From the NCBI GenBank assembly GCA_946965045.2, contig OX337233.1:124001-188000 (forward strand): 64,000 nucleotides of DNA, given 5' to 3'. Below, piece by piece: positions 9,009-62,174 of the stretch. Origin of the DNA: Epithemia pelagica. Taxonomy: Eukaryota; Protista; Bacillariophyta. A program made the translations under genes and the position numbers. The notes beneath the pieces were generated by a model that made no database searches, was not told where the DNA came from, and saw only the letters and a list, made by a program, of their open reading frames with translations. How positions within the stretch are numbered: position 1 is the first letter of the stretch; each line of letters begins with the position of its first letter.

Positions 9009-9036
9009 GGCAGACGATGGACGTGTGCTGTCTAAA

Positions 9037-12791: not shown

Positions 12792-13991
12792 TCAAGTTCC
12801 ATCCTTCCCTTCATCACCACGGTGCGTATTGGGCCTTGCTCGTTTACAAGCTAATGTCGATGTGGAGAAGGGTGAGATATCATCATCTTGGATACCCACA
12901 CCTTCAAGAGAATGATACCATCCGTTTGGATGCTGGTCACAGAGTCGACGAAAGCACCACGTACTCTTGTCCATTAGTGGTAATGTCGCACAGGTAGGAT
13001 TGTACACACCACCAATCACGGCAACTTGATTGGCAACAGTCACCATACTGCAGCCCCTGGGTAAATTCACTGGTGGGAGATTCCACACACGGTTCCGGCG
13101 CGTATCCAGAACTTCCACGGTTGAATTGACCCATGCTCCTCCCGCCACAACCAGACAAGATCCCACGGCAACCACTGCACAAGATCTTCGTGCATTGGAA
13201 AGCCTCAACTCCAAATGAGTGGTCCAGGTGGGTGTGAAAGAAATAAACATCGAGCCAGTTTCCTTTTCTGTCTCATCATTGGCAAAGGGTGTTGCGAAGT
13301 CCAAATACTCCAGCGAGCCAAGATTGCCATTATCGTTTTGGCCTCCAACGACAAAGATGCGGTGACCAATGACCGCACTGGCACATAATTGTCGAGGAAC
13401 AGTCATGGATGGTCCCGCAGTGACTATGTGGTTGTTTGTATCAATAATATCCACCGACGGCACATAACGATCGTTGTAGCCACCCATTACAACGATGTAT
13501 CGGTTGTGCACCGCAACAGCACAACATCCCATTCGTCTCGTTGATAATCGACAGCTTAATCTGGTCCAATTACTCTCATGTGTGGTGCTTGATGTCAAAG
13601 ATGAATGTAGCAAGTCATCGGCATCGATTCGTTCAATAGAGTCAAACGAACCTTCATCGTATCCTCCCATCACGTAGACGGCTCTGTTGCACACAGCAGC
13701 GGCATGTCCAAAACGTTTCTTGTTCAAGGGCGTTCCTTCTCGCCATTGCTTGTTGGACTCTGCCAAGTTTAAGACAAGAATGGAATCTAGCTCGCCTTGA
13801 CCTGGTTGATATCCGCCCAACACGACGACGGTTTGCTCCTTGTTGTTATCGGTAGGATTCAGTACGACCGAAGCATGATAGTAACGCCATCCACCCTCAA
13901 GAGAAGGCCAGTCCTCGAGATTCCATTCAGGTGGCTCGTCCGATAAGACAAGGCCCGACTGTCGTGCTTGTTCTTTCAGTGTCGTGGTCAT
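12792..13991 (-). CDS. Kelch-repeat protein K1 (399 aa, intact, intronless)
   Basis: Six kelch blades with R-x-x-h...VxGG...Y/W motifs; start MTTTLKEQ. Confidence 0.9.
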   Translation of the reverse strand: MTTTLKEQARQSGLVLSDEPPEWNLEDWPSLEGGWRYYHASVVLNPTDNNKEQTVVVLGGYQPGQGELDSILVLNLAESNKQWREGTPLNKKRFGHAAAVCNRAVYVMGGYDEGSFDSIERIDADDLLHSSLTSSTTHESNWTRLSCRLSTRRMGCCAVAVHNRYIVVMGGYNDRYVPSVDIIDTNNHIVTAGPSMTVPRQLCASAVIGHRIFVVGGQNDNGNLGSLEYLDFATPFANDETEKETGSMFISFTPTWTTHLELRLSNARRSCAVVAVGSCLVVAGGAWVNSTVEVLDTRRNRVWNLPPVNLPRGCSMVTVANQVAVIGGVYNPTCATLPLMDKSTWCFRRLCDQHPNGWYHSLEGVGIQDDDISPFSTSTLACKRARPNTHRGDEGKDGT

Positions 13992-15541
13992 GGTTCTAAA
14001 CAATGACTGCAGAATTTATGGGGATCGAGACACTGTCTTGACGCACGTAGGTTTGCTCTGCTCCTTTCGTTGTGATGTTGATGGGTGTGGACTGGAAGCA
14101 CGACGACTATCTTGACGAAATGGATGGGTTACGAGACAAATCGTGACCGTATCAACGCGATGAAGAAAACCACGCATCCTTCTTGGGAGTATCGTGGGCG
14201 TTTTTGGAACCTGTGATTGCTGATGGGTTCGGACTTATCCCCAGCGGTGAAGATCCAGGGTGCACTCACTGTAATCCCCCCCCCAAATTACTCGTTTCTC
14301 TTCTTCCGAATCGACGACCTTTCCCAACCAGTCACGGATATGGGATCGTGCGGAATCACAGTCATCTTCCCCCACTCCCCACCAGTCATTGAAACAGGCA
14401 ATTGTGAGGGCAATAGTAGATGTTGGGGAGGATGTGACGCAGTGTCTTCTCGTTGGGCTTGCTGGGAGAAGGAAAACAAAACACCAGAGAACCAACACCC
14501 AAACCGGAACAAACTAGATGGAACGAGACGATGCGGTCAAACACCAATGTCTCGCATCATTGTCATCATCTAATTGCTGTTGATTCGAATTGACTGTGGG
14601 GGTGTGGCAGTCTCGTTCGAACCGAGAAACAGGGAAAGCAGCATGATGGTGGTGATGAAACATTGTCCGTTTCGTGGGCTTTGGTGCAACTCATGGTTCT
14701 GGTCGTTCTTGTTCTGCCGCCGACAATTCCCTTGCAGAACAATTCCATGCCTTTCGCATCCGTCATCCAGGCTTGCAGACCACGGCACCAATTCGTTCGA
14801 ACGCTGATCAATTCAAGTGTTTTGATCTCGTGTGCCCCTCCGCACTGTCCTCCTCCCACCAGCATTCGTCCGGGTGTCAGCATGCGATCTTTGTGGGACA
14901 ACCATGAGGAAGAACAACCACACCAAGACGTTGTGTACAAGAGCGGGCAAAGGCATGAATTTTCTTTCAGTGAGGTGGGAGCGGTAATGTAATAGTGACC
15001 TCTCAAGCTACCCTTGCTCGTTGGACAGGCGTGACATTGGTTCTTCTTTGTCGGTATCTCTTTCAATATCTTTCAACCAATGACCGTTTTCAAAGACGAC
15101 GCTGCACGTTTGGATGCATATCGTGTTTGCCGGCTCCACACGCTCTTGTGCGAATATGGAAAGGATTCGATAAGTCCCATCTACAACGAAAGTCGCTGCT
15201 GGCATCTCGGGAATTGGGATGCTACGCCGCTCTCTTTACCCGCCCAGAAGCAAGATGGACAGTATCTCACATTGGGTACTAATCGAATTGGTCAAATTCC
15301 ACCGCGCGTTTTTGGGTTCTAACTGACAATCATCACCGAACCTTTTGAGTTTGCCGTGTTCCAGGTAAGACGTCTCGCTGACCTGGCATCCGATTTGGCC
15401 ATGGTGTACATGTCCAATTCTTGGTTGGTGTTGAATTCCACTCGCTCGGGGACATAGTGTGGGTGTTCAGGCGGTCCCACACCGCAAGGTTTCCCAGACT
15501 TTTACTTACCCACAACCCTTTTGCCATTGACGTCCGAACCA

Positions 15542-15798
15542 TCGACCTCTGTTCCGACCACCACTTTCTCCTCAAGGCAAGAAAACAATCAACCGTAGCC
15601 AGAGCAAACGCTCACCGTCATGGATGCTTGGTTAGATCAGATAGCTCCGAGCATAGCGCGCCTCGGTCTGTCGACCCCTGTTCCGACCACCACTTGCTCA
15701 AGGCAAGAAAACAATCAACCGTAGCCACAGCTAACGCTCACCGTCATTGATGCTTGGTTAGATCAAATAGCTCCGAGCATAGCGCGCCTCGGTCTGTC
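15542..15798 (+). repeat. Two-copy tandem duplication, ~129/126 bp
   Basis: tcgacc...gttccgaccaccac...agcgcgcctcggtctg repeated from 15542 and 15671. Confidence 0.9.
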
Positions 15799-16184
15799 TC
15801 CACAGTCACGAGAGTGTCTCCCTGTTATGTGGACAAGGAGACGATGCATTCCGAGGATGGAAACGGGTGGTGCGAGGGAGTATTACTTGCCACGGAGAAA
15901 TACTTCAGGGACTGCCAAAGTACTCAACAATACGACAGTAGCACTCAACACAGAGCAAAACTCTGCAGAATCCATGACATTGTTTTGTCGTTTCGGAACA
16001 GTCGCGCTATCCCGGACACGTCGTATGACATGATTGATGATTTCATTTGTACAATAAGGATTCACATGAGAACTCCGCAGGCAGCGGACACTACGAAAAC
16101 TGTTTGAGATCAACATGTTTGAGATCAAAATGATCATTAGATAGCTTCACCATTCTAGGACATTAAAGCAACGTGATGCCCACT

Positions 16185-17339
16185 TCAAGTTTCATCCGCC
16201 CCTTCATCACCACGGCGTGTATCACGCCTTGTTAGTGAAATATGAACATGTCGGATATCTATTCTTTCCCGGAACTGGTACCATCCGTTGGGCTGCTGTT
16301 CACAGAGACGACGAAAACACCACGTATTCTTGTCCACTAGTGGCAATGTCGCACAGGTAGGATTGAGCTCTCCACCAATCACGGCAACCTGATTGGCAAC
16401 AGTCACCATACTGCAGCCCCATCGTTGTTCTTGCAGTCTAGGGAGATTCCACACGCGGTTGAAGTGCGTATCCAAGACTTCCACGGTTCGTCCTCCTGCC
16501 ACCACCAGACAAGATCCCACGGCAACCACTGTACAAGAATATGGTGCATTGGAAAGTACCAAATGAGAATGAGTGGTCCAGGTGGGTGAGAAAGAATTGA
16601 ACGTCGAGCCAGTTTCCTTCTTTGTCTCTTCATTGTCACCAGGCTTTGAAAATTCCAAATACTCCACCGAGCGTCCTGTGTAGCCTCCAACGGAGAAGAT
16701 GCGGTTACCAATGACCGCACTGGCACAATTTGATCGAGGAACAGTCATGGATGGTCCAGCAGTGACAATGTGATTGTTGGTATCAATAATCTCAACAGAC
16801 GACAAATAACGACCGTTGTAGCCACCCATCATAACAATATATTGGTTGTGCACTGCGACAGCACAACATCCCCATCGTTGCGTTGATAATCGACAAGTTA
16901 ATGTCGTCCAATTGCTCGCATGTGTGATGCTGTTTGTTGTTAAAGGTGATAGCAGCAACTCCTTTTCGTCAATTCGTTCGATACAATCAAATACTGAGCT
17001 TCCATTGTAGCCTCCCATGACGTAGACTCCTCCGTTGCACACAACAGCGGCATGTCCAATACGTTTCTTGTTCATGCGTGGCCCTTCGCGCCACTGCTTG
17101 TTTGATTCTGCCAAGTTTAATACAAGAATGGAATCTAGCTCGCCTTGACGTGGTCGATATCCACCCAACACGACGACGGTTTGTTCTTGGTTGTTATCGG
17201 GATGATTCAGTACGACCGATGTATGAAACCAACGCCATCCACCCTCAAGAGGAGGCCAATCGTTTTCATTCCATTCTGCTGTGTCGTCCGATAAGACAAG
17301 GCCCGACTGCCATGCTTGTTCTTTCAGTGTTATGGCCAT
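16185..17339 (-). CDS. Kelch-repeat protein K2 (384 aa, intact)
   Basis: Six kelch blades; start MAITLKEQAWQSGLVL. The ORF-track extension upstream is leader sequence. Confidence 0.9.
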   Translation of the reverse strand: MAITLKEQAWQSGLVLSDDTAEWNENDWPPLEGGWRWFHTSVVLNHPDNNQEQTVVVLGGYRPRQGELDSILVLNLAESNKQWREGPRMNKKRIGHAAVVCNGGVYVMGGYNGSSVFDCIERIDEKELLLSPLTTNSITHASNWTTLTCRLSTQRWGCCAVAVHNQYIVMMGGYNGRYLSSVEIIDTNNHIVTAGPSMTVPRSNCASAVIGNRIFSVGGYTGRSVEYLEFSKPGDNEETKKETGSTFNSFSPTWTTHSHLVLSNAPYSCTVVAVGSCLVVAGGRTVEVLDTHFNRVWNLPRLQEQRWGCSMVTVANQVAVIGGELNPTCATLPLVDKNTWCFRRLCEQQPNGWYQFRERIDIRHVHISLTRRDTRRGDEGADET

Positions 17340-18074
17340 GGTTGCAAACCTTTCGACTTCAGAATTTATGGGATGTAGGTTTGCTCTGCTCCTTTCATTA
17401 TGATGGGTGTGGACTGGAAGCACGACTGACTTGACGAAATGGATGGACCAAAGAGGGGAAGGAGATTTCGTCACGAGACAAATCGTGACCGTAGCCACGC
17501 AATGAAGAAGATCACACATTCTTCTTGTTCGGAGTACCGTGGAAGTGTTTTTGCATACCGGAATAAACTTTATGTTTGTTGGCACTGCTCTTGTTGTTCC
17601 ATCCTGCTAGTACTGCTGATTGATCGTCGGAGTCCATCAGCATGACACGGGTGCCTGTCGTTGTGCGCAATTCATCTGATGGGGTTGAAAAGCTTCCAAC
17701 TGTGGAACACTTGAGAGAGATGGACGCGAACACACACCGTCAGTCGGTCCATTACGTCCATTGTCAAACGACGAGAAAGAGTGGCCGACGTCGTCTGGTC
17801 GTCGACCAGTGACCGTGGGTTGTCTCCTTTTCTGTCTTGTGTGGTGTCACATGTAGCTCTCACTCTACCCGATTCTGTACGTGAGGACACAGAAGTGACT
17901 CTGTCTTTCTGGGAATCCGAACTCACTTGCAAGAGGTTGCGACCACAAAGGTTTCCTCGCGCTTTGCATACACCGGCAGATTGTGACCTCTCACATCTGC
18001 CCCCGCCGAGGAGGAATGGTGGCACAAACAAGATCTTTTTTGATTTCTGTGCATGATATATACATGATGATAAT

Positions 18075-19734: not shown

Positions 19735-21060
19735 GTGTTATTGTCGTGCAACAAGGTTTCGGTGTAACTAGCATTGAGGGGCAAGACATCGCGATGGGGA
19801 ACGGCTTGTTTCCAGGCATGAGCAATTGAACGAGCAATATTGCGACAGGAAATAGTGGTGGTGGATGTTTCCTGACTCGTCGTCGTCAATGGCACAAAAG
19901 TGCCCACAAAGTCCAGCTTCCAAGACGGAGTTCAACACAGTTGGTTCCACGACAATGATACCATGAGTTTCGTTCATATGGAGGAAGAACGATGAAGGCC
20001 TTCTTCTTTGTGGCTGCGTTGGTAGTTCGGGAGGTTGTGGTGTGTCAACGATAAGGCTCGATTCCTTGTTGTCGTACTGCTGGTCCATTGCGACAACTGG
20101 CACGACCAATCCGATTTGGTGGGTTCCTCTTGGACTTGTTCTGGAGGGACTTTACTGTCCTCGTTGCAACTGTCCTCCTGACGAGACGAAATTCCATTCG
20201 CAGGAGACAACGTGGGTTGTTCGATCGTAGCCAAGAGGGTCTTGCAAAAAGTGTTGCGGTATACGTCTCTGGACGTAGGGTTCCGCCGATCCACCATGGA
20301 AGCAGGAAACTTGATGGTGAAGAATCGAACACATTCGGTCGCATGGTGACTCCTCCGAAAGGGACACTGTTCTTGGTTATCGTGTCGGGATTGGACATGA
20401 CACGGTCCTCCCTCCTTACTTCCATCCAAAAATGGAACCATCAGAAGCGGGCCTCATCCAGTCCAACAAAGTTTTGCCTTGTCGTGCTTCTGCTCCTGAT
20501 CCTCTCATCATCGGACTTTTGGATCCACCTGTTTCGTCCTTTTGTCGGATTCATCAAACTCTAGAAAATTGAAACAAAGCCAATTTGAGAACTTTTTTGG
20601 AATATAGTTACCAATCGATGACGTTGTGCCGTGTAAAGAAGTGCCATGATACCACCACAAGGACATGGCCAAGGCGTAGTACCACTCGTAGACACGCGCA
20701 AGTCGGATCGTTCCTTCCATGCCTTTGACAACAAACAAGCACATTCTATCTTGCAACATGTTCTTTCTACTTTTGAGTAAACACTAACAAGGTTTAAGGA
20801 TTGCAATCGAACGTAGAAAACAAGTCAATGACTTATAACAAAACGTCTAGGTTTTCATCCGTCCCTTCATCACCACGGTGAGTATCGAACCTTGCGCGTT
20901 TACAAGCTCATGTCGATGTGGAGAAGGGTGAGATATCATCATCTCGGATACCCAAACCTTCAAGAGAATGATACCATCGATTGGGCTGCTGCTCACAGAG
21001 TCGACGAAAGCACCATGTATTCTTGTCGATTAGTGGCAATGTCGCACAGGAAGGAATTTG
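19735..21060. repeat. Segmental duplicate (K3 3' end and flank)
   Basis: Near-identical to ~50160-51520 (K8 3' end and flank); boundaries approximate. Confidence 0.85.
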
Positions 21061-21461
21061 CCATCCACCAATCACGGCAACTTGATTGGCAACAGTCACC
21101 ATGGTACAGTCCTCGCGGTGATTTACGAGTACACGCCGCCATTGCAAACAACAGCGGAATGTCCAGCACGTGTCTTGTCCATGGATGGTCCTTCTCGCCA
21201 CTGCTTGTCTGGGTCCGATAGATTCAATACAAGAACGGAATCCGTGGCACCTGGGGATTGTCTGTAACCTCCCATCACGACGACCGTTTGTCTGTCGTGA
21301 AAGTTATCGTTTTCCTTATCGGGATGATCAAGTACGACCGTAGTTTGACGGTCTCGCGCTCCTCCCACAAGAGGAGGCCAATCGTTTTCATTCCATTCTG
21401 GTGTCTCGTTCAACAAGGCAAGGCCCGAATGCCATGCTTGTTCTTTCAACGTCGTGGGCAT
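20833..21461 (-). pseudogene. Kelch K3, internally deleted
   Basis: Blade 1 and the start of blade 2 are joined out of frame at ~21120 to blade 6 (NHREDCTMVTVANQ); ~0.58 kb shorter than K8; extra TGA at 20908-20910. Confidence 0.88.
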
Positions 21462-23420: not shown

Positions 23421-24650
23421 TCAAGTTTCATCCTTCCCTTCATCACCACGGTGCGTGTGGGGCCTTGCTCGTTTACGATCTGATGTCCAGGTGGGGAAAG
23501 GCGAATTATCAGCATGTTGGATATTCCTTCCTTCCCGAAATAGACACCATATGTTGAACTGCTGGTCAAAGAGTCGTTGAAAACACCACGTATGCTTGTC
23601 CAGTAGTGGTAATGTCGCACAGGTAGGACTTCCCCAGCCACTTATCACGGCAACTTGATTGGCAACAGTCACCGTACTGCAGTCGTCGCGGTGATTATCC
23701 AATGGTGGGAGATTCCAAACGCGGTTGCGGCGGGTTTCCAAGACTTCCACGGTTGAATGGCCTTGTCCACCCGCCACCACCAGACAAGATCCAACGGCAA
23801 CCATTGCACAAGAACTTTGTGCATTGGAAAGCCTCAACTCCGAATGAGTGATCCAAGTGGTCGAGAAGGAAATGAATGTCGAACCACTTTCCTTTTTTGG
23901 CTCATGATTGTCACACGGTGTTGCATAGTCCAAATACTCCACAGTGTCAAGAAAACCATGCTCGCCATGGCCTCCAACGACAAAGATGCGGTGGCCAATG
24001 ACCGCACTGGCACACCATTGTCGTGGAACAGTCATGCTTGGTCCTGCAGTGACAGTGTCATTGCTGGTATCTATAATATCCACCGACGACAAATAACGAT
24101 TGCTGTAGCCACCCACTACAACGATATATCGGTTTTGGACCACAACAGCACAACATCCACATCGGCCCGTTGATAAATGACATGTCAATGTTTTCCAATG
24201 GCTTTCATGTGTGATGCTGGTTGTTGTTAAAGATGATTGTAATAGATCGTTGGCATCAATTTGTTCGATGCAGTCCAAATTTGCTCCATCACGGTATCCT
24301 CCTGTGCGACCTCCCATGGCGTAGACGGCTCCGTTGCACACAACAGCGCCATGTCCAGCACGTTTCTGGTTCATGGGTGGCCCTTCTCGCCATTGCTTGT
24401 CTGGGTCTGCCAGATTCAATAAAAGAATAGAATTCACATAGCCTCGGCGTTGTTGAATTCCTCCCAACACGACAACAATTTGTGCCTTGTTGTTGTCGTT
24501 GTGGAGTTCCTTGTCGAGATGATCGAGTACGACCGTAGCATGAAGATAACGCCATCCACCCTGAAGAGGAGGCCAATCGTTTTCATTCCATTCTGCTGTC
24601 TCGTCTGAAAGGAAAAGGTCCGACTGCCATGCTTGTTCTTTCAGAGTCAT
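23421..24650 (-). CDS. Kelch-repeat protein K4 (409 aa, intact)
   Basis: Six kelch blades; start MTLKEQAWQSDLFL. Confidence 0.9.
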   Translation of the reverse strand: MTLKEQAWQSDLFLSDETAEWNENDWPPLQGGWRYLHATVVLDHLDKELHNDNNKAQIVVVLGGIQQRRGYVNSILLLNLADPDKQWREGPPMNQKRAGHGAVVCNGAVYAMGGRTGGYRDGANLDCIEQIDANDLLQSSLTTTSITHESHWKTLTCHLSTGRCGCCAVVVQNRYIVVVGGYSNRYLSSVDIIDTSNDTVTAGPSMTVPRQWCASAVIGHRIFVVGGHGEHGFLDTVEYLDYATPCDNHEPKKESGSTFISFSTTWITHSELRLSNAQSSCAMVAVGSCLVVAGGQGHSTVEVLETRRNRVWNLPPLDNHRDDCSTVTVANQVAVISGWGSPTCATLPLLDKHTWCFQRLFDQQFNIWCLFREGRNIQHADNSPFPTWTSDRKRARPHTHRGDEGKDET

Positions 24651-26159
24651 GCTCAGTCTTCCTTTTGTTGACCGCAGCGCATTTATGAGGATCAAAGGAG
24701 CACACTGATGACTGTGTAATAGATTGCAGTGGGCTGCTCGGATGGGTGTGGACTGGAAAAAGAAGAGTATATACTGTAATCCCCAGCGGGGGAATCATGA
24801 GGACTAGTGACTCAGTGGTTAAAAAACAGAAAGGACGACACAAACGACGCGACCCATCCTTACATTCTTGTGCGATCGGACGTAGGCTTATGAGTACTAC
24901 ACGTGGAAGCCTTCGAGCCAGTGCTTTTGTCGGGTACGTACATAACACCACACACACATCTTTTGCCCAAATACAAACAAAACATCATGGATTGGATTCC
25001 AACTATGGGTACATCCGGACTGTTGACGAATGTGAATTGCATTGTCTCGTGCATGACGTCTCAATTCACATCAGAGAATGCTGATGGACTGGTTTCAGCT
25101 TCGACATGCGGCAGATCGCACCAGCAGCAAGTTTAATGGAACCGCTGTCGACCCAGTTGCGTCAGTCCCAGAGACTTCTTCCTTCCCCTTGATGGTTCCA
25201 TTCCATCTTTGCTCGATCAACACTGATTCGTTCTTCACAAGACGACGGACGAGGAACGTAGAGATGCAGCAACCAACCATGCTCGATTTCCAAAAAGAAC
25301 CATCAGCGAAGCGGACAACAGGGTCCACAAGGTTTTTGGCTTGTCGTGCTTTTCATCGTTCTGCTCCTCTCATCGTCGGACATTGGAATCCACCCGTTTC
25401 GTCCTTTTGTTGGATTCATCGACCACGAGACCATGAACCAAGCCACACAAGGATCAGGATCAAGAGATGCCTAAACTAGCGATTCGTGGTGGAAAGGACC
25501 AAAGACCACACAGTTATTCGATTGCACTACAGTGATGATGACTGCACCCAACAACAACAACGAGTTACACCCAATCATCAACAACAAGAAGAGCCGTTCT
25601 GCTCATTCATCAAGGAGCACGGCAAGACGAGAAAAATCAGGTTTGACGATCTACCAGCAAGACCCAAACAACAATAACAGTCGTCGCATGCACAGCAGGC
25701 ATCCCGTTTTGTCCTCCTTCTCGCAATTTTCAAATAGGCAAAGTAAAGCCATATACTCCGTGCTGGATCGGTTGCTTCGCGCAACCATGGGACCGTTGTT
25801 GTCGGAATGGCGGGTTGGTGGGCATCGGCCTATCGACATGCCGTACCAACCTTGCTTCAACTGCAAGAACGGATGTTGACGACGGCCAATGAAGGCATGG
25901 ACCAAGTCTCGATTCAATCTCTCATTGCGAAAGCACAAATCTCACTTTTCTCAATGTCGTCCGCATCTTGTTCCATGGCTCGTCCCCAGTCAAATCGTCT
26001 TCAATCAACTCTGGATGGGAGTTCGGCTTTGGAGACGATTGACAAGGTATCATCATCGACTGCTCGCAATTTCTCTTGAATGGTTGAACAACAAAGGTTT
26101 TGCCGTTCATACCTATACAAGGGATTGTGGCACCATCTCCGATATTCATTACTGATGGC

Positions 26160-26590
26160 ATGGGTATGCAATCCGTGGGAGACGCCCGGTTGGTATCCGG
26201 CTCGATTGCTCAAGCTTGCATAGGTCCCGATTGGTACAAGGGTTTCATTACCGATGCCCATGCCGATGGAAGGTTTAGTCTCGATTTGTGGAGAGGGCAT
26301 ATTGCTTTGATCTTCTTACCGTGATTGGAGAAACGAATCAAGTACGAGTCATCGATGACAATAATACCGACGACAGCAAAGTACGCAAACACACACGTGG
26401 CTGTATGAAGATTGTCGTGTGATTGCGGTCGAGTGTAGTCGGACACAGCAAATCGCGACGCCCCTTCTACAGTCCTGTTACATGATTGTGTACCGTGAGT
26501 TTGAAGACGGTGAGATTTGGTACAAGATTGAACTTGGTGATATTCAGCAAACTGTCAGAAAAAAGAATGAGGCACGTCCTCTACATTCAT
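26160..26590 (+). pseudogene. Possible decayed tandem Tudor/Agenet-like coding remnant
   Basis: GSIAQACIGPDWYKGFITDAHADGRFSLDL and, in another frame, QVRVID...LYEDCRVIAVE...YMIVYREFEDGEIWYKIELGDI; frameshifted; pattern recognition only. Confidence 0.35.
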
Positions 26591-26859
26591 AGTGATTAGT
26601 TTGTGACTCTTGGAGTCCAGCCAAAAAAAGCGAATTCTGCCAAACCATCTCTTGAATCTGATTGGTAAAGGCTAGCAAAGCAATTCACACAGCGACAAAA
26701 ACACTCAACACAAAGCACACCTCTAGATAGTCTTTGTCTTTTCGTAAAAGTCACGTTCTGCCGGACGCTGCAATTCCATGAGTGATTTTATTCTTTAGTA
26801 CAATTCAGGATTATCCTTCCCTTTTTCAATACAGTGCGTATTGGTCGTGCTTCATTTAG

Positions 26860-27060
26860 ATTTTGATTTTGACGCGGAGCGTTCAAAGCGATTTCCAAAG
26901 GGTGGGAGATTCCACACGCGGGTCCGGTGCGTATCCAAAAGGTTTCCACAGTTGAATTGCGTCGTCGTCCCGCCACGACCAGCCCGGATCCCACAGCAAT
27001 CACTGCACAAGAACATCGTGGATAGGAAAGAACCAATTCAGAATAAGTGATCCATGGATG
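26860..27060 (-). pseudogene. Isolated kelch blade-5 fragment
   Basis: WITYSELVLSYPRCSCAVIAVGSGLVVAGRRRNSTVE. Confidence 0.75.
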
Positions 27061-27312
27061 ATGACTCTGTGTGCTGCAAAGTGCCATGATGCCACCACAA
27101 AGTCCCAGATTCTTGTCTCACGACCGCACGACCACGGCAGTGGCTCTTCCACATGTAGAGACAAAAATGTGGTCTTCCTTCCCCGCCTTTGACAACAAAC
27201 CAGCACATTCTATCTTGCAACATAATCTTTCAACTTTTGAGTAAACCACTTACTAGGTTCTAGGATTACAATCGAACATAGAAAACAAGTCAGTGACTTG
27301 AGAACAAAACGT

Positions 27313-28542: not shown

Positions 28543-28697
28543 GGTTCTTAGTGTTTTGGCTGCAGAATTTATGAGGATCGAGGCACTGTCTTGTAAGAGG
28601 CACGTAGTTTGCTCTACAGTTGTGATTCTGATTGATGCGGACTGGAATCACGACTGACTTGACGAAATGGATGGACCAAAGAGGGGTAAGGGCTGGG

Positions 28698-41395: not shown

Positions 41396-41694
41396 TGTTG
41401 AGCAGAATGGTTTGGCCGTCAGCTTTTACCACTTTACTGTAAAATTGAACGTAATCCTATTTTACTGGCTTGATTGTTTCCAAAGAATGAGCTCTAGGTT
41501 CATTTGTTGGCGATTTGTTCGCCTTGCCTCTTCTGACTACGTCAGCGAACGTCACGCGTGCGGAGCTCGTCCTGCTTGTTTTGTTCTCCATAGTATTCTT
41601 CATTGTCTTTGGTCTTGCTTTCATTGTCTTTGGTCTTGCTTTGCCAGGCGTTCCCGCGTCGCAGTGTTTTCTTACTTGCTCATTATTTCCAACA
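41396..41694 (-). repeat. 3' LTR of copia-2
   Basis: Direct repeat of 47366-47664. Confidence 0.97.
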
Positions 41695-47328: not shown

Positions 47329-47365
47329 GAATGAAAGCAGTGAAAAGGATTTTCTTTGGAAGCAA

Positions 47366-48670: not shown

Positions 48671-49855
48671 TCAAGTTCCATCCTTGCCTTCATCACCACG
48701 GCGTGTATCGGGCTTTGTTCGTTTATGAGCTGATGTCGAGGTGGAGAAGGGAGAAATATCATCATCTCGGATACCCATACCTTCAAGAGAATGATACCAT
48801 CCGTTCGATTGCTGCTCACAGAGTCGACGAAAGCACCACGAATTCCTATCCATTAGTGGCAATGTCGCACAGGAAGGATTGATCCATCCACCAACCACGG
48901 CAACTTGATTGGCAACAGACACCATACTGCAGCCCCAACGATCTTCTTGCAGTCCAGGGAGATTCCACACACGGTTGCGGTGCGTATCCAAGACTTCCAC
49001 ACTTAAATTGCCTCGTCCTCCCGCCACCACCAGACAAGATCCCACGGCTACCATTGCACAAAAAGCTCGAGGGTTGGAAAGCACCAATTCAGAGTGAGTG
49101 GTCCAAGCGGACGAGAAGGAAATGACTGTCGTCAAAGACTCGTCTTTTCTCTCCTCTGCAAAGTCCAAATACTCCACCGAATCAAGTACATTGTCATCGT
49201 TTCGGCCTCCAACGACAAAAATGCGGTGTCCAACGACTGCGCTGTCAAAGTATGATCGAGGAACAGTCATAGATGGTCCCTCAATGAGAGTGTGATTGCT
49301 GGTATCAACAATATCCACCGACGACCAATAACGATTGCTGCGTCCACCCATTACAACGATGTATCGGTTGTGCACGGCAACAGCACAACATCCCACTCGT
49401 CCCGTTGATAATCGACATGTCAATGTTGTCCAATAACTATCCTGTGTGGTGGTGGTTGTAAAGGATGATCGAAGCAAATCATTGGCATCGATTCGTTCAA
49501 TACAATCCAAAAGTCCTCGACTGTATCCTCCCATCACGTACACGCCGCCATTGCAAACAACAGCGGCATGTCCAGCACGTGTCTTGTCCATGGATGGTCC
49601 TTCTCGCCACTGCTTGCTGGGGTGTGATAGATTCAATGTAAGAACCGAATCGAGCTCGCATTGACCTGTTCGATATCCACCCAACACGACGACGGTTTGT
49701 TCTTGGTTGTTATCGGGATGATTCAGTACGACCGAAGCATGACGAGAACGCCATTCACCCTCAAGAGGAGGCCAGTCCTCGAAATTCCATTCATGTGTCT
49801 CGTCTAACAGGACAAGGCCCGACTGCCATGCTTGTTCTTTCAGTGTCGTTGTCAT
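48671..49855 (-). CDS. Kelch-repeat protein K7 (394 aa, intact)
   Basis: Six kelch blades; start MTTTLKEQAWQSGLVL. The 161-codon upstream extension in the ORF track is spacer sequence. Confidence 0.88.
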   Translation of the reverse strand: MTTTLKEQAWQSGLVLLDETHEWNFEDWPPLEGEWRSRHASVVLNHPDNNQEQTVVVLGGYRTGQCELDSVLTLNLSHPSKQWREGPSMDKTRAGHAAVVCNGGVYVMGGYSRGLLDCIERIDANDLLRSSFTTTTTQDSYWTTLTCRLSTGRVGCCAVAVHNRYIVVMGGRSNRYWSSVDIVDTSNHTLIEGPSMTVPRSYFDSAVVGHRIFVVGGRNDDNVLDSVEYLDFAEERKDESLTTVISFSSAWTTHSELVLSNPRAFCAMVAVGSCLVVAGGRGNLSVEVLDTHRNRVWNLPGLQEDRWGCSMVSVANQVAVVGGWINPSCATLPLMDRNSWCFRRLCEQQSNGWYHSLEGMGIRDDDISPFSTSTSAHKRTKPDTRRGDEGKDGT

Positions 49856-51281: not shown

Positions 51282-52488
51282 TTATAACAAAACGTCTAGG
51301 TTTTCATCCGTCCCTTCATCACCACGGTGAGTATCGGACCTTGCGCGTTTACAAGCTAATGTCGATGTGGAGAAGGGTGAGATATCATCATCTCGGATAC
51401 CCATACCTTCAAGAGAATGATACCATCGATTGGGCTGCTGCTCACAGAGTCGACGAAAACACCACGAATTCCTATCCAGTAGTGGTAATGTCGCACAGGA
51501 AGGATTGTCCCATCCACCAATCACGGCAACTTGATTTGCAACAGCCACCATACTGCAGCAATTGCGGTGATTCACGAATGGTGGGAGATTCCACATGCGG
51601 TTGCGGTGAATATCCAAGACTTCCACGGTTGAACCCCATCCTCCCGCCACAACCAGACAAGATCCCACGGCAACCACTGCACAAGATCTTCGTGCATTGG
51701 AAAGCCTCAACTCCAAATGAGTGGTCCAGGTGGGTGAGAAAGAAATGAATGTCAAGCCTATCTCCTTTTTTGTCACATCGCTGTCACAGGGTGTTGCATA
51801 GTACAAATACTCCACCTTGTCAACACGACCATGCTCGTTCCAACCTCCAACGACAAAGATGCGGTGTCCAATGACCGCACTGGCACAACAAAATCGTGGA
51901 ACATTCATGGATGGTCCCACAGAGACAGTGTGGTTCCTGGTATCAATAATATCCACCGACGACAAATAACGACCGTTATAGCCACCCATTACAACGATGT
52001 ATCGGTTGTGAACCGCGACAGCACCACATCCCCATCGTGGCGTTGATAACCGACATGTCAATGTCGTCCAGTTCATCTCGTGTGTGATGCTGGTTGTCAA
52101 AGATGATTGCAGCAAATAATTGGCATCAATTCGTTCGATACAATTCAAACATGAACCTTCAGAGTATCCTCCCATCACGTAGACGCCGCCATTGCACACA
52201 ACAGCGGCATGATGCCCACGTTTCTTGTCCATGGACGGCCCTTCTCGCCACTAAATTCATTACAAGAATGGAATCTAGCTCGCCTTGGCCTGTTCGATAT
52301 CCTCCCAACACGACGACGGTTTGTTCCTTGTTGTTATCGGTACGATTCAGTACGACCGAAGCATGACGAGAACGCCATTCACCTTCAAGAGGAGGCCAGT
52401 CCTGGTAATTCCATTCAGCTGTCTCATCGTCTAACAGGACAAGGCCCGACTGCAATGCTTGCTTTTGCAGTGTCGTTGTCATGGTCAA
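51282..52488 (-). pseudogene. Kelch K8, frameshifted by a short deletion near 52253
   Basis: The NL(AESNKQ)WREG segment is missing about 17 nt relative to paralogs; ORFs 52159-52488 and 51282-52232 are in different frames. Confidence 0.85.
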
Positions 52489-54878: not shown

Positions 54879-55492
54879 TTAATCACCGAGGTGAGTATCG
54901 GGCCTTGCTCGTTTATGAGCTGATGCCGAGGTGGAGAAGGGTGAAGTATCAGCATGTTGGATATTCCTTCCTTCCCCCAAAAGACACCATCTGTTGGGCC
55001 GCTGCTCACAGAGTCGTCGAAAACACCACGAATTCCTATCCATTAGTGGTAATGTCGTACAGGACGGATTGTCGCCACCACCAATCACGGCAACTTGATT
55101 GGCAACAGCCACCAAACTGCAGCCTTCGCGGTGATTGTGGTCATTTCCGAATGGTGGGAGATTCCATACGCGGTTGCGGTTCGTATCCAAGACATCAACG
55201 GTTGGATTGCCTCGTCCTCCTTCTGCCACCACCAGACAAGATCCCACGGCAACCACTGGACAACGACTTCGTGCATTGGAAAGCCTCAACTCCGAATGGG
55301 TGGTCCAGGTGGGTGAGAAAGAAATGAACGTCGAGCCAGTTTCTTTTCTTGTATCATCACTGTCACAGGGTGTTGCATAGTCCAAATACTCCACCGAGTC
55401 AAGATAGTCATCATCATTTTGGCCTCCAACGACAAAGATGCGGTGGCCAACGACTGCGCTGCCAAAATATGACCGAGGAACAGTCATGGAAG
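54879..55492 (-). pseudogene. Kelch K9, 5'-truncated (blades 4-6 only)
   Basis: Begins at MTVPRSYFGSAVV; homology to paralogs stops at ~55492, where K10 3'-flank sequence begins. Confidence 0.85.
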
Positions 55493-55663
55493 ATTACACT
55501 ATATAATATATCCCCTTTTGCAGGACATCAATGCAGGAAACAAGAAAGTGTCTGAGAACAAAATCATTATTTTATAGTTCCACTAGTGTAGGACATCAAT
55601 GCAATATGTTGCCCATTTCAAGTTTCATCCTTGCCTTTATCACTAGTACGTACTGGTCCTTGT

Positions 55664-56815
55664 TCATTCAGATTTTGATGTCGAGGTGGAGAAGGACGAA
55701 ATGCCCATTCCTTCCCGAAAATGGTACCATCCGCTAAGTTGCTGCTCACAGAGACGGCGAAAACACCACGAATTCTTGTCCATTAGCGGTAATGTCGCAC
55801 AGGTAGGATTGTGCTCTCCACCGATCACGGTAACTTGATTGGCAGCAGTCACCATACTGCAGCCCCTGCGGAAATTACGAAGAGGAGGAAGATTCCATAC
55901 GAGGTTGCGGTTCGTATCCAAGACTTCCACGGTTGAATTGACACGTCCTCCCGCCACCACTAGACAAGATCCCACGGCTGCCATTGCACAAGGCCTTCGT
56001 GCATTGGAAGGCACCAACTCCGACGGAGTGGTCCAAGAGGATGAGAAAGAAATGAATGTCGAACCAATCTCCTTTTTTGTCTCGTCATTGTAACAAGACT
56101 TTGCAAAGTCGACGTACTCCACCGAGTCAAGATGATGGCCATGCTCTGTTTCGCCTCCAACGACATAGATGCAGTGGCCAATGACCGCACTGGCACACCA
56201 TTGTCGTGGAACAGTCATGCTTGGTCCCGCAGTGACAGTGTGGTTGTTTATATCTATAATATCCACCGACGACAAACAACGATTGCTGCGTCCACCCAAT
56301 ACAACAATATATCGATTGTGAACCGCAACAGCAGCACATCCCCATCGTGGCGTTGATAACCGACATGTCAATGTTGTCCAATGACTCTCATGTGCGGTGC
56401 TGGATGTCAAAGATGTTGTTAGGATATCGTCGGCATCAATTTGTTCGATACAATCCAAAGGTGCTCCATTGTCTCCTCCCATCACGTAAATGCCTCCATT
56501 GCACACAACAGCGGCATGTCCAGCACGTTTCTGGTTCATGGGTGGCCCTTCTCGCCATTGCTTGTCTGGGTCTGCCAGATTCAATAAAAGAATAGAATTC
56601 ACATAGCCTCGGCGTTGTTGAATTCCTCCCAACACGACAACAATTTGTGCCTTGTTGTTGTCGTTGTGGAGTTCCTTGTCGAGATGATCGAGTACGACCG
56701 TAGCATGAAGATAACGCCATCCACCCTGAAGAGGAGGCCAATCGTTTTCATTCCATTCTGCTGTCTCGTCGGAAAGGAAAAGGTCCGACTGCCATGCTTG
56801 TTCTTTCAGAGTCAT
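55664..56815 (-). CDS. Kelch-repeat protein K10 (383 aa, intact)
   Basis: Six kelch blades; the first ~100 codons match K4. Confidence 0.88.
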   Translation of the reverse strand: MTLKEQAWQSDLFLSDETAEWNENDWPPLQGGWRYLHATVVLDHLDKELHNDNNKAQIVVVLGGIQQRRGYVNSILLLNLADPDKQWREGPPMNQKRAGHAAVVCNGGIYVMGGDNGAPLDCIEQIDADDILTTSLTSSTAHESHWTTLTCRLSTPRWGCAAVAVHNRYIVVLGGRSNRCLSSVDIIDINNHTVTAGPSMTVPRQWCASAVIGHCIYVVGGETEHGHHLDSVEYVDFAKSCYNDETKKEIGSTFISFSSSWTTPSELVPSNARRPCAMAAVGSCLVVAGGRVNSTVEVLDTNRNLVWNLPPLRNFRRGCSMVTAANQVTVIGGEHNPTCATLPLMDKNSWCFRRLCEQQLSGWYHFREGMGISSFSTSTSKSE

Positions 56816-59804
56816 GCTCAGTCTTCCTTTTGTTGACCGCAGCGCATTTATGAGGATCAAAGGAGCACACTGATGACTGTGTAATAGATTGCAGTGGGCT
56901 GCTCGGATGGGTGTGGACTGGAAAAAGAAGAGTATATACTGTAATCCCCAGCGGGGGAATTATGAGGATTAGTGACACAGTGGCTAAAAAAAAGAAAGGA
57001 CGACACAAACGACGCGACCCATCCTTACATTCTTGTGCGATCGGACGTAGGCTTTTGAGTACTACACGTGGAAGCCTTCGAGCCAGTGCTTTTGTCGGGT
57101 ACGTACATAACACCACACACACATCTTTTGCCCAAATACAAACAAAACATCATGGATTGGATTCCAACTATGGGTACATCCGGACTGTTGACGAATGTGA
57201 ATTGCAATGTCTCGTGCCTGACGTCTCAATTCACATCAGAGAATGCTGATGGACTGGTTTCAGCTTCGACATGCGGCAGATCGCACCAGCAGCAAGTTTA
57301 ATGGAACCGCTGTCGACCCAGTTGCGTCAGTCCCAGAGACTTCTTCCTTCCCCTTGATGGTTCCATTCCATCTTTGCTCGATCAATAATGATTCGTTCTT
57401 CACAAGACGACGGACGAGGAATGTAGAGAAGCAGCAACCAACCATGCTCGATTTCCAAAAAAGAACCATCAGAGAAGCGGACAACAGGGTCCACAAGGTT
57501 TTTAGCTTGTCGTGCTTTTCGTCCTATTACTGCTCCTCTCATCATCGGACATTGGAATCCACCCGTTTCGTCCTTTTGTCAGATTCATTGACCACAAGAG
57601 ACCACACAAGGAGCACGACCAACAGATGTCGAAACTCGTGGTTCGTGGCGGGAAAGCAGCAATGGTAACACAGTCATTCGATTGTGCTACGATGATGCCG
57701 ACAACACAAAAACAACTACAACCAGTTACACCCAAACATCAACAAGAACTACCGTCCTGCTTGTTCGTTGAGGAGCACGACAAGAAGAGAAAAATCAGGA
57801 TTTCCGATCCACATATAGAGGACCCGAACAACAAGAACAACAACACTTGTCGCATGCACAGCAGGCATCCAGGGTTTTGTCCTCCTTCGCGTAATTGCCT
57901 ATAGTAACGAATGAATGGTTTCGATCGAAGCATTGACGATTGGTGGTTCAGGACAAAATAAGACCAGTTGGTTATATTTTTGAACACGGCCCACCAGCAC
58001 CACAATGATAAACCACCAACACGGGGGTCGTCACGAAGCTACATGGACAAGGATCATGTTTCGAGAACTGCAGGTATGTATCATGCAAGGACCCAACCGC
58101 ACAAATTGATGCTTGGCCGAATCCGAGACCACCCTTCGAACGAGTCGCTGTGCCTTCTTAGACGTTGTTTCGTGAAGGTGTTTCTGGCGCGGTGCACGAC
58201 CATGATCTTCCACAACAAGATGATCCGATCTTTTCAACAACAGATAGAACTGTTGCCAATTCCAAGAAACACTCCGAGTGTATCCAAGAACAAAAGGACT
58301 GTCATCTCGCCAGCATTATTTGTGCTCTCGAACATCATAGATGGTGCGCGGAGAAAGAAAATGAAGAGAATATTGGTGTCGTTGACTGCGGGGTGCTTCC
58401 GGTTTTCCTCTTTCACTTCCGGTCTGCACCATGGTCGATGCCCCTTGCCAAATCTTGTGCCAACCTGTTTTCTCATTCACGATATTGTTCCATGGGCTCG
58501 CATTTCGAAGAAGAAATGCGCTCGCACTGATCGAGATGCCATCCTGTGTGTCGAGGAATATCGACAGAGACGTTTCTGCCTGCCAATGACACCAATGTGT
58601 GGCTGTTCCCCGCTCTTGCTGCTCCAGAATCAATGCAAAGAATATTGCCATCCCGTTGCTGCTTGAAATGACGACAACAAGAAATCCTCCACCAGCATCG
58701 ACCAGTGGCCGTAGCACCATTATCAATCATCACAACAGGACGCGAAAGATGTCTTGTCACAACAACAATAAACAACCAACCACCACAGGTACAAGACTCG
58801 GTTTCCCTACGTCCATGCTCAGGCGCAATGATGACACGTTCTTCGAAAGAGGAGGAGGAGGAAAGTATAGAAGCAGCATCCCCTCATGACACAATCCTCC
58901 CAACTTCCATGCACAAGTCAACCCTTTGTCAATTTCTAGCAAGAACCCTAAGAGAAGCAGACAATAGGATCAAGATGGTTTCGCATTGTCGTGATTATTC
59001 TCTCCCTGCTCCTCTCATCGTCGGACATTTGAATCCACCCGTTTCGTCCTTTTGTTGGATTCATCGACCACGAGACCATGAACCAAGCCACACAAGGATC
59101 AGGATCAAGAGATGCCTAAACTCGCGATTCGTGGTGGAAAGGACCAAAGACCACACAGTTATTCGATTGCACTACAGTGATGATGACTGCACCTAACAAC
59201 AACAACGAGTTACACCCAATCATCAACAACAAGAAGAGCCGTTCTGCTCATTCATCAAGGAGCACGGCAAGACGAGAAAAATCAGGTTTGACGATCTACC
59301 AGCAAGACCCAAACAACAATAACAGTCGTCGCATGCACAGCAGGCATCCCGTTTTGTCCTCCTTCTCGCAATTTTCAAATAGGCAAAGTAAAGTCATATA
59401 CTCCGTGCTGGATCGGTTGCTTCGCGCAACCATGGGACCGTTGTTGTCGGAATGGCGGGTTGGTGTGCATCGGCCTATCGACATGCCGTACCAACCTTGC
59501 TTCAACTGCAAGAACGGATGTTGACGACGGCCAATGAAGGCATGGACCAAGTCTCGATTCAATCTCTCATTGCGAAAGCACAAATCTCACTTTTCTCAAT
59601 GTCGTCCGCATCTTGTTCCATGGCTCGTCCCCAGTCAAATCGTCTTCAATCAACTCTGGATGGGAGTTCGGCTTTGGAGACGATTGACAAGGTATCATCA
59701 TCGACTGCTCGCAATTTCTCTTGAATGGTTGAACAACAAAGGTTTTGCCGTTCATACCTATACAAGGGATTGTGGCACCATCTCCGATATTCATTACTGA
59801 TGGC

Positions 59805-60238
59805 ATGGGTATGCAATCCGTGGGAGACGCCCGGTTGGTATCCGGCTCGATTGCTCAAGCTTGCATAGGTCCCGATTGGTGCAAGGGTTTCATTACCGAT
59901 GCCCATGCCGATGGAAGGTTAAGTCTCGATTTGTGGACAGGGCATATTGCTTTGATCTTCTTACCGTGATTGGAGAAACGAATCAAGTACGAGTCATCGA
60001 TGACAATAATACCGACGACAGCAAGAGTACGCAAACACACACGTGGCTGTATGAAGATTGTCGTGTGATTGCGGTCGAGTGTAGTCGGACACAGCAAATC
60101 GCGACGCCCCTTCTACAGTCCTGGTACATAATTGTGTACCGTGAGTTTGAAGACGGTGAGATTTGGTACAAGATTGAACTTGGTGATATTCAGCAAACTG
60201 TCAGAAAAAAGAATGAGGCACGTCCTCTACATTCATAG
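59805..60238 (+). pseudogene. Second copy of the possible Tudor/Agenet-like remnant
   Basis: Duplicate of 26160-26590; ORF 59861-60238 ends ...YIIVYREFEDGEIWYKIELGDIQQ. Confidence 0.35.
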
Positions 60239-60504
60239 TGATTAGTTTGTGACTCTTGGAGTCCAGCCAAAAAAAGCGAATTCTGCAAAACCATCTCTTG
60301 AATCTGATTGGTAAAGGCTAGCAAAGCAATTCACACAGCGACAAAAACACTCAACACAAAGCACACCTCTAGATAGTCTTTGTCTTTTCGTAAAAGTCAC
60401 GTTCTGCCGGACGCTGCAATTCCATGAGTGATTTTATTCTTTAGTACAATTCAGGATTATCCTTCCCTTTTTCAATACAGTGCGTACTGGTCGTGCTTCA
60501 TTTA

Positions 60505-60705
60505 GATTTTGATTTTGACGCGGAGCGTTCAAGGTGATATCCGAAGGGTGGGAGATTCCACACGCGGGTCCGGTGCGTATCCAGAGGTTTCCACAGTTGA
60601 ATTGCGTCGTCGTCCCGCCACGACCAGCCAGGATCCCACAACAATCATTGCACAAGAACATCGTGGATAGGAAAGAACCAAATCAGAATAAGTGATCCAT
60701 GGATG
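60505..60705 (-). pseudogene. Isolated kelch blade-5 fragment (copy of 26860-27060)
   Basis: WITYSDLVLSYPRCSCAMIVVGSWLVVAGRRRNSTVE. Confidence 0.75.
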
Positions 60706-60957
60706 ATGACTCTGTGCCCTGCAAAGTGCCATGATGCCACCACAAAGTCCCAGATTCTTGTCTCACGACCGCACGACCACGGCAGTGGCTCTTCCACATG
60801 AAGAGACAAAAATGTGGTCTTCCTTCCCCGCCTTTGACAACAAACCAGCACATTCTATCTTGCAACATAATCTTTCAACTTTTGAGTAAACCACTTACTA
60901 GGTTCTAGGATTACAATCGAACATAGAAAACAAGTCAGTGACTTGAGAACAAAACGT

Positions 60958-62174
60958 CTAGTAGGCTTCCTCCATCCCTTCATCACCACGGTGAGTATTG
61001 GACCTTGCGCGTTTAAGAGTTGATGTCGATGTAAAGAAGGGTGAGATATCTTCATTTCGGATAACGGCATTTTCAAGAGAATGATACCATCCGTTCGATT
61101 GGTGCTCACATAGTCGACGAAAACACCACGAATTCCTATCCATTAGTGGCAATGTCGCACAGGAAGTAGTGCGCCATCCACCAATCACGGCAACTTGATT
61201 GGCAACAGTTACTAGACTGAAGCCTTCGCGGTCATTTCCGACTGGTGGGAGATTCCAAACGCGGTTGTATCCAAGACTTCCACGGTTGAATGGCCTTGTC
61301 TACCCGCCACCACCAGACACGATCCCACAGCAACCATTGCACAAGAACCTCGAAGTTCGGAAAGCCTCAACTCCGAATGAGTGATCCAGGTGGGTGAGAA
61401 AGAAGTGAACGTCGAGCCAGTTTCCTTTTCTGTCTCATCACTGTCCCAGGGTGTTGTGTCGTCCAAATACTCCACCGAGTGAAGCATGCCATGCTCATTA
61501 CGGCCTCCAGCGACAAAAATGCGGTGACCAACGACCTCACTGGCACACCATGTTCGTGGAACAGTCATTCTTGGCCCCGCAGTGACAGTGTGATTGTTTG
61601 TATCTATAATATCTACCGACGACAAATAACGATCGTGGTAGCCACCCATTATAACGATGTATCGGTTGTGAACCGCAGCAGCACAACATCCCCATCGTTT
61701 CGCTGATAAGCGACATGTCAATGTCGTCCAATGGCTCTTCTTCGAGCTGCTTGATGTCGAAGATGGTTGGAGCAAATCGGTGACATTGATTTGTTCGATA
61801 CAATCCAAACTTGAATGTCTATTGTATCCTCCCATCACGTAGACCCCTCTATTGCACGTAACAGCAGCATGTCCATAACGTGCCTTGTTCATCGGTGACC
61901 CTTCTCGCCACTGCTTGTTCGATTCTGCCATATTCAATATCAGAACGGAACTGACACCGTATTGACCTTGTTTATATCCTCCCAAGACGACGACGGTTTG
62001 TCTCTTGTGGTTGCTATCCTCGTCCGTATCGGGATGTCCAATTACGACCGAAGCATGATAGTCTCGCGCTCCTCCCATAAGAGCAGGCCAATCGTTTTCA
62101 TTCCATTCAGGTGACTCGTCTAACAAAACAAGTTCCGACTGCCATGCTTGTTCTTTCAGTGTTGTTGTGGTCAT
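60958..62174 (-). pseudogene. Kelch K11, frameshifted near 61270 (between blades 5 and 6)
   Basis: Start MTTTTLKEQAWQSELVL; a short deletion in EVLDT(HRNR)VWNL shifts the frame; the C-terminus continues in ORF 60958-61188. Confidence 0.85.

Follow-up and report, generated by a model that had tools for sequence, protein, structure and literature searches.

A 64,000-nucleotide stretch of the diatom Epithemia pelagica (contig OX337233.1, positions 124,001 to 188,000), hereafter the window, carries a tandem array of Kelch genes. Searching it by tblastn with one Kelch copy as the query, we located 11 copies arranged head-to-tail, all intronless and all on the minus strand, together with two small fragments. 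A preliminary description of this DNA had listed 11 kelch genes; the figure holds as a count of copies, but only seven of them are intact genes and the other four are broken. The window is eukaryotic in character, with a G+C content of about 48% and Copia and Gypsy elements interspersed. As set out below, the most variable positions of the encoded proteins form a ring around the predicted ligand pocket and are under diversifying selection, and the genes are best explained as a repertoire of recognition subunits.

The seven intact copies, whose coordinates refer to the window like all others given without a locus name, are K1 (12795..13991, 399 amino acids), covered by a single tblastn high-scoring segment pair (HSP) over residues 1-365 and matching Pfam Kelch_1 at 2.6e-28; K2 (16185..17339, 384 amino acids), K4 (23421..24656, about 410), K5 (27313..28542, 409), K7 (48671..49855, 394) and K10 (55664..56821, 385), each recognized by both Pfam and tblastn; and K6 (37595..38722, 375 amino acids), which has a short C-terminal tail and provides our residue numbering. 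Among the broken copies, K3 (20968..21461; two HSPs in frames -3/-2) has suffered an internal deletion and a frame change and keeps only residues 1-111 and 312-366, while K8 (51282..52482; two HSPs in frames -2/-3) carries a frameshift near residues 84-88 (about 52243-52250). K9 (54879..55487; HSP over residues 202-364) is 5'-truncated, running from residue 202 to the end, and lies about 180 nucleotides from the 3' end of K10. K11 (61081..62159; two overlapping HSPs in frames -3/-2) changes frame near residues 283-303 (about 61263-61335). The two fragments, of about 40 codons each, correspond to tblastn HSPs at 26938..27066 (residues ~258-300) and 60589..60699 (residues ~262-298).

All nine of the open reading frames (ORFs) scanned against Pfam matched Kelch_1 (E = 1e-23 to 1e-35, in three to five stretches each), and Kelch_KLHDC2_KLHL20_DRC7 was one of the two top-scoring families for these proteins. 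The intact proteins are soluble, of about 375-410 amino acids. They have neither a signal peptide nor a membrane anchor; since a signal peptide is missing, they are probably intracellular. The propeller starts about 22 residues past the start codon, and the DNA upstream is a non-coding module shared among the copies, as exemplified by the roughly 200 nucleotides that end at the start codon of K1 (13992..14200, minus strand). When 600 nucleotides upstream of 22 intact copies were compared, the last 200 or so before the start codon were conserved (majority-base frequency 0.6-0.9), with lower values further upstream.

AlphaFold2 (AF2) models of K6 (mebf44289ed4c; predicted local distance difference test score, pLDDT, 76) and of K1 (mb5ef64175133; pLDDT 82, from a more diverse alignment) both show a six-blade propeller with four strands per blade (6 x 4). 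The GG doublet that follows strand B and the conserved Arg that precedes strand A are invariant or nearly so. In structural comparisons with VIA-align, the top match was KLHL12 (Z=34.1, root-mean-square deviation (rmsd) 1.6 Å over 258 residues), followed by KLHL17 (Z=34.0) and a Keap1-peptide complex (Z=33.4). Foldseek agrees, relating K6 to the kelch domains of KLHL12, Keap1 and KLHL3, so that the best structural matches are peptide-binding Kelch domains. The family consists of stand-alone six-blade Kelch propellers.

Outside the propeller, the K1 model shows a helix (residues 5-11) and a strand (14-16) at the N-terminus, with pLDDT 83-87, and two helices (342-353 and 358-364) at the C-terminus, followed by some 40 disordered residues that bear a basic KRxR patch, from which a partly nuclear location would be expected. 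The N-terminal motif is [ILM]xEQAxxSGLx[LF] and the C-terminal helix motif LPLxD[RK]NSWCFRRL; the former, and the latter as LxLxD[KR]NS..F.RL, are kept in relatives that are just 36-57% identical. The sequence EW..WPPLxGGWR ahead of blade 1 is patterned like a strand D with its D-A loop, and blade 6 is therefore probably closed by the N-terminal strand, which would complete the propeller. Neither terminus matches Pfam, and the C-terminal 69 amino acids have no sequence match in the PDB. Pfam scans of the Kelch ORFs of the window returned Kelch families only, with no match to BTB, BACK, F-box, NACHT, NB-ARC or death domains; no F-box appeared in the first 40 amino acids scanned alone at E up to 10, and no SOCS-box or VHL-box profile matched the proteins or their termini. 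The BC-box that binds Elongin proteins has the consensus [STP]LxxxCxxx-hydrophobic, and column compositions read over residues 1-36 and over C-terminal windows of residues 330-368 offered no fit to it. One N-terminal candidate, TLKEQAWQSG, was rejected as it carries an invariant Gly at the final hydrophobic position.

In a six-blade Kelch propeller, the loops joining strands B to C and D to A lie on one face, here called the top, opposite that of the A-B and C-D loops; the B-C and D-A face is the one that holds the ligand in Keap1 and KLHL propellers. We assigned residues to strands and loops from DSSP strings and the Kelch motif register. Among 110 paralogs the strands are near-invariant (mean entropy 0.4-0.65 bits), and 25 of the 28 hypervariable propeller sites (entropy above 2.2 bits) fall in B-C or D-A loops, although these contribute only 116 of the 324 propeller residues (Fisher p=1.3e-9). 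It is the extreme sites alone that cluster on the top: mean entropy is not in excess in top over bottom loops (Mann-Whitney U p=0.40). The bottom loops are moderately variable throughout, and mean entropy therefore fails to separate the two classes, while the top loops are bimodal, with invariant structural residues beside extreme ones. No alignment column is invariant at the pocket positions that flank the conserved Arg or immediately follow GG. The preliminary description had contrasted near-invariant strand cores and GG motifs with residue pairs that vary after the conserved Arg of each blade, and had placed this variation on the ligand-binding face; the pairs can be read directly in the translations, and the entropies and the clustering agree with the rest. 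It had also described the loops after GG as variable in length. This is so in blades 2, 3, 4 and 5 (with, for example, 7-14 and 3-6 residues), but the same loop is constant in blades 1 and 6. The D-A loops are of fixed length.

How do these sites relate to known ligand contacts? Our mapping of Keap1 residue numbers onto the repeat motif draws in part on the known Keap1 sequence. When the family profile was aligned with Keap1-type repeats, the conserved Arg fell on Arg and Arg+1 on the Ser after it; the Tyr and the Phe of GGYDGHTF were matched in blade 4 by GG+1 (site 224) and GG+6 (site 229). The Keap1 pocket residues include Ser363/508/555/602, Tyr525/572, Phe577 and Arg415/483 (PMC6891428). 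The spacing of Tyr572, Phe577 and Ser602 fits the GGYDGHTF repeat, so the sites that prove below to be under selection are in register with Keap1 ligand contacts. Judging from these alignments, the fast-evolving sites correspond to the positions lining the Keap1 peptide pocket in those blades that could be aligned.

Selection was measured on a 352-codon alignment of 22 intact copies, seven of them the window's own and 15 taken from five other loci. The pooled Nei-Gojobori (NG86) ratio of nonsynonymous to synonymous substitution (dN/dS) was 0.27 in strands, 0.41 in bottom loops and 0.84 in top loops; it was 0.44 in the N-terminus and 0.23 in the C-terminal helix. Purifying selection acts on the scaffold and on the two termini. 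The a priori set, made up of Arg+1 and Arg+2 in each blade (12 codons), gave 2.0 (codon-bootstrap 95% interval 1.15-3.7; permutation p=0.0016), with 2.9 in the window copies and 1.76 in the 15 copies from other loci, which had played no part in the preliminary description. Its expectation that dN/dS would rise above background at the variable sites was correct, and the ratio there also exceeds 1.

Site models of the codeml type lead to the same result. Our own implementation, which reproduces the iqtree GY+F3X4 M0 likelihood to 0.001, gave likelihood-ratio statistics (2ΔlnL) of 227 for M1a versus M2a, 254 for M7 versus M8, the comparison suggested at the outset, and 200 for M8a versus M8. Under M8, 8.8% of codons evolve at a dN/dS ratio (omega) of 2.9. 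A posterior above 0.95 singles out 28 sites, 25 of them in B-C or D-A loops (p=1.2e-9; p=6e-5 against bottom loops alone), distributed over all six blades at Arg-1, Arg+1, Arg+2 and GG+1 to GG+8. The two subsets were also run separately: the seven window copies gave an M8a/M8 2ΔlnL of 56, with all 15 sites of posterior above 0.9 on the top face, and the 15 copies from other loci gave 112, with 17 of 21 sites there; the site posteriors of the two sets correlate at rho=0.74. Gene conversion inflates the likelihood ratios of site models, and because recombination can have this effect we cut the gene into thirds, gave each a tree of its own and ran M8a/M8 again, obtaining 2ΔlnL of 64, 54 and 72. 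Tree-free pairwise estimates of dN/dS point the same way. A ring of about 28 pocket positions is thus under positive diversifying selection. Among the 110 paralogs these positions yield 107 distinct signatures, a median pair differing at 22 of the 28, and they are enriched in Tyr (3.2x), Arg (2.7x), Phe (2.6x) and Trp (2.1x), a composition resembling that of interfaces. Hypermutation was rejected as the source of variability at the a priori sites, where synonymous diversity (pS) is 0.29 and the overall value 0.30. The 28 selected sites do show a slightly raised pS (0.40 versus 0.29), but their nonsynonymous diversity (pN) is 0.55 versus 0.13. Reading frames some 1.1 kb in length are still intact at a mean synonymous divergence (dS) of about 0.37.

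The tree of these genes is star-like and the window copies are not each other's closest relatives; when three segments of the gene were each given their own tree, the summed log-likelihood improved by about 680 units over a single tree. Every copy switches nearest relative along its length in 120-nucleotide windows, at a median pairwise identity of 80%. In K2, for instance, codons 261-340 match a copy from another contig at 97-100% identity, and codons 41-80 match a third copy at 97%; K7 is likewise a mosaic, of several paralogs. Gene segments are exchanged between copies, both within and between arrays, by gene conversion. The window also contains a segmental duplication, on the minus strand. 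Block A (24420..27950) takes in the 3' part of K5, the spacer beyond it and about 240 nucleotides at the start of K4; block B (56570..61550) comprises the 3' part of K11, the spacer with an insertion of about 1.4 kb (~57600-58965) and the 5' part of K10. The two are 95-100% identical in 100-nucleotide windows, which points to a recent duplication, and identity drops to 74-84% on both sides, inside coding sequences. With breakpoints so placed, K4 and K10 are chimeras that share their first 85 or so codons identically and are about 80% identical over the rest. The preliminary description had proposed a rapidly diversifying repertoire under birth-and-death evolution, serving pathogen, mating or degron recognition. 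The evolutionary part of this proposal is sustained by the site models and by the clustering of variable sites, and the birth-and-death part by the four broken copies out of 11, the retrotransposon insertions and the internal segmental duplication; gene conversion, which it did not contain, has to be added.

The array is part of a much larger family. A word-index search with K6 gave 510 matches among 2932 candidates scored; the best 120 of the 510 are 61-76% identical, 360-490 amino acids long and found in ENA only. Five of the best matches were traced to contigs, all of them in ENA assembly ERZ21939226, and four of these five lie in head-to-tail arrays on different contigs. Full-length relatives at 36-57% identity were added by an exhaustive search covering 1.84 billion representatives. 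All 20 of these divergent relatives that were looked up are again ENA-only, and the three that were traced lie in ERZ21939226, two of them as single genes among ordinary genes. Neither search found relatives in other sources, more distant matches being generic Kelch proteins. The family thus comprises several hundred copies and was found only in this one assembly.

Several observations bear on the divergent relatives. Two single-copy ones, in loci L006 (6001-7128) and L007 (6001-7089), are 41-44% identical and embedded among ordinary genes, outside arrays; they are candidates for the progenitor type of the family. In locus L008, two divergent relatives stand side by side (1140-4046 and 6001-8028), 53% identical over the propeller; both are extended at the C-terminus by about 300 residues or more without Pfam match, and these extensions could hint at an ancestral effector part. 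Many divergent relatives come as near-identical protein pairs on two contigs of similar size, suggesting that both haplotypes are present in ERZ21939226. Among the matches of the K6 search, proteins from the window itself lack a partner of this kind at 90% identity; the array may differ strongly between haplotypes, or sit in only one.

What function would account for a fixed fold, variable sites gathered on one face, an omega above 1, mosaicism and turnover, all of which are established? We consider it somewhat better than an even bet (about 0.55) that these stand-alone propellers are diversified recognition subunits, probably forming an immune-type repertoire. The fixed scaffold with its invariant termini would present a variable pocket that binds different peptide or protein ligands in each copy. 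Point substitutions, and gene segments transferred within and between arrays, create new pocket combinations, while tandem duplication, truncation, frameshift and retrotransposon insertion turn the copies over. The proteins would act as interchangeable target-recognition subunits docking through their invariant termini onto a common partner, most plausibly an adaptor of the ubiquitin-ligase type, as for other Kelch proteins. Their targets would change fast, and proteins of viruses or parasites are the most plausible ones, hence a repertoire of the innate-immunity type.

Several points weigh against this interpretation. No RNA run is found among the sequencing runs that match the locus, the four matching runs being DNA, in fragmented Logan contigs from one study, with coding parts 10-25 times deeper than spacers. 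No effector or adaptor domain was found in the family (BTB, F-box or SOCS box; Pfam or PDB sequence matches of the termini). More than a third of the window's copies (4 of 11, 36%) are broken. The top face was assigned topologically, from DSSP strand order and motif register, rather than from coordinates. A broader set of positions in the Keap1 register (51 codons) has a dN/dS of 1.06 (95% interval 0.77-1.45), which means that values above 1 are confined to part of the face. Finally, gene conversion is pervasive, and recombination remains within each 120-codon segment of the control.

The propellers could instead be housekeeping degron receptors for the cell's own proteins, working with Cul2 and Elongin B/C in the manner of KLHDC2, KLHDC3 and KLHDC10, in which case the diverse pockets would reflect subfunctionalisation to endogenous substrates, with no arms race. 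The architecture is similar: the KLHDC proteins, too, have Kelch repeats as their only domain, are comparable in size and end in a short helical extension, and one of the two best Pfam families is named after KLHDC2. In VIA-align, KLHDC3, KLHDC10 and KLHDC2 with Elongin B/C match at Z 31.1, 29.6 and 28.0, and their alignments run from model residues 19/20/29 through 360-363, beyond the propeller. That these matches reach the C-terminal helices is a lead towards a docking function rather than evidence of one, and for KLHDC2 and KLHDC3 the rmsd is high (5.3-5.7 Å). Against such a role, neither terminus shows a readable BC-box or Cul2-box consensus and no SOCS-box or VHL-box was matched. Moreover, the KLHDC proteins are not hypervariable multigene families, and an omega of about 3, hundreds of copies in one assembly, 36% of them broken here, and ongoing segment exchange are unlike stable receptors. 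We regard this explanation as rather unlikely, though it stands ahead of the other alternatives. Should it be true, the family would represent an unusual adaptive radiation of ligase substrate receptors without a recognizable ligase-docking domain. Some stand-alone Kelch propellers are enzymes or lectins, among them the epithiospecifier and nitrile-specifier proteins and NanM/YjhT. An enzymatic or small-molecule- or sugar-binding role, with the top face as active or sugar site, has in its favour VIA-align matches to the Arabidopsis specifier proteins (Z 31.3 and 30.1) and to YjhT (Z 30.9). An active site would be conserved, however, and in this family nothing varies more than the top-face pocket, with no invariant column beside the Arg or after GG; the closest domains by both Z and rmsd are the peptide-binding ones of KLHL proteins and Keap1, and a secreted lectin would need the signal peptide that these proteins lack. 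This role seems to us highly improbable.

Two further possibilities are to be weighed. The pockets might serve self/non-self or mating-type recognition and tell conspecific genotypes apart, as do the fungal het genes with WD40 propellers. The signature indeed matches that of the HNWD genes of Podospora anserina (het-d, het-e and het-r), in which the surface of the WD40 propeller is under positive selection and repeat units are exchanged within and between loci (PMC1805685). Such systems usually consist of a few highly polymorphic loci and not of hundreds of paralogs, and the present proteins have no signal peptide, membrane anchor, death or NACHT domain. We give this a low probability, and an equally low one to the idea that the family is decaying or selfishly amplified and has no present function, the signal of selection being an artefact of relaxed constraint and gene conversion. 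The broken copies, the interspersed retrotransposons, the strong mosaicism (the 680 log units noted above) and the absence of a matching RNA run would all be expected of decay. It is harder to reconcile with the purifying dN/dS of 0.2-0.45 in strands and termini, with raised sites on one face only and in the same register in six blades, or with the advantage of M8 over M8a, where omega is fixed at 1 (by 200, and by 54-72 for segments with their own trees). Nor is pS raised at the a priori sites; frames of about 1.1 kb stay intact at the mean dS given above, and the upstream module is conserved.

With the kelch domains of Keap1, KLHL12, KLHL3 and KLHL20 the present proteins share the six-blade propeller (Z 33-34, rmsd 1.6-1.7 Å), the GG doublet and the Arg before strand A, and, in the alignable blades, fast-evolving sites in register with the residues of the Keap1 peptide pocket. 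They differ in having no BTB or BACK domain and in being just 18-25% identical; the KLHL proteins are conserved single orthologues, whereas the present family counts hundreds of tandem paralogs whose pocket evolves at an omega above 1. Large lineage-specific tandem families with birth-and-death evolution and an adaptively evolving substrate-binding part are also formed by the nematode MATH-BTB and F-box proteins and the plant F-box-Kelch proteins. Work by Thomas in Genome Research in 2006 reportedly found positive selection in the substrate-binding domain of such ligase-adaptor families, and is said to have proposed that they target pathogen proteins. Unlike the present family, where Pfam detects none, those proteins carry a recognizable ligase-docking domain (BTB or F-box). 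As regards mechanism, the nearest precedent is HNWD, in which a recognition repertoire has evolved in the same way. There the repeats are of the WD40 type and fused to NACHT/HET effector domains, and about ten genes shuffle repeat units inside the gene; here stand-alone Kelch propellers are concerned, and exchange takes place among hundreds of whole propeller genes. We found no published description of a hypervariable Kelch family or of a diatom Kelch expansion in the full-text literature.

The recognition of viruses and parasites by diatoms and other microalgae is little understood, though such interactions shape blooms. Against this background the family is a concrete and testable recognition candidate, since rapid evolution is confined to the canonical ligand pocket, on a scaffold that is well understood; it is also a natural library of Kelch-based binders. 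It would be the second independent case, after the fungal WD40 het genes, of a propeller surface diversified by selection and exchange between copies. We would go further only tentatively: it is possible, if on balance doubtful, that this diatom possesses an intracellular immune-type system made of hundreds of stand-alone Kelch propellers, each with a pocket of about 28 residues shaped by selection and gene conversion, and amounting to a germline-encoded binder library. By analogy, and with the same reserve, the logic of such a library might resemble that of the HNWD repertoire of fungi or the NLR repertoires of plants, although neither this scaffold nor this lineage has a described counterpart.

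Other elements are found in and around the array. A Gypsy-type retrotransposon ORF of 1689 amino acids (29042..34111, plus strand; Pfam RVT_1, RNase H, rve and RVP) separates K5 from K6, and a Copia-type ORF of 1756 amino acids (41457..46727, minus strand; Pfam RVT_2 and zf-CCHC) separates K6 from K7. Both are uninterrupted, and their length suggests recent, possibly active elements. Between K3 and K2, on the opposite strand, lies an RNI-like leucine-rich-repeat ORF (18075-19400, plus strand) with an in-frame stop near 18837 and a weak LRR_6 match; a homologue, 80% identical, occurs in locus L003 at 12859-13551. No TIR domain was found at this ORF or beside its L003 homologue. A spacer module present twice (19974-20564 and 50396-50983) contains overlapping ORFs of about 155 amino acids on both strands, without family match, and is probably non-coding repeat DNA of the array unit. 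At the edge of the window, a 720-amino-acid ORF (19-2181, plus strand) occupies a G+C-rich stretch (58% versus 48%) and has no Pfam match; it bears a CxxC...HxxxxC pattern near its end, like the zinc knuckle of non-LTR (long terminal repeat) retroelements, and is unrelated to the 720-amino-acid ORF of locus L006. Finally, a 189-amino-acid ORF with an HxK (PLD-like) motif (9474-10043, minus strand) lies directly downstream of DNA that extends to about 10420 and resembles the Kelch upstream module, and on its other side abuts a Copia element (3764-9185).

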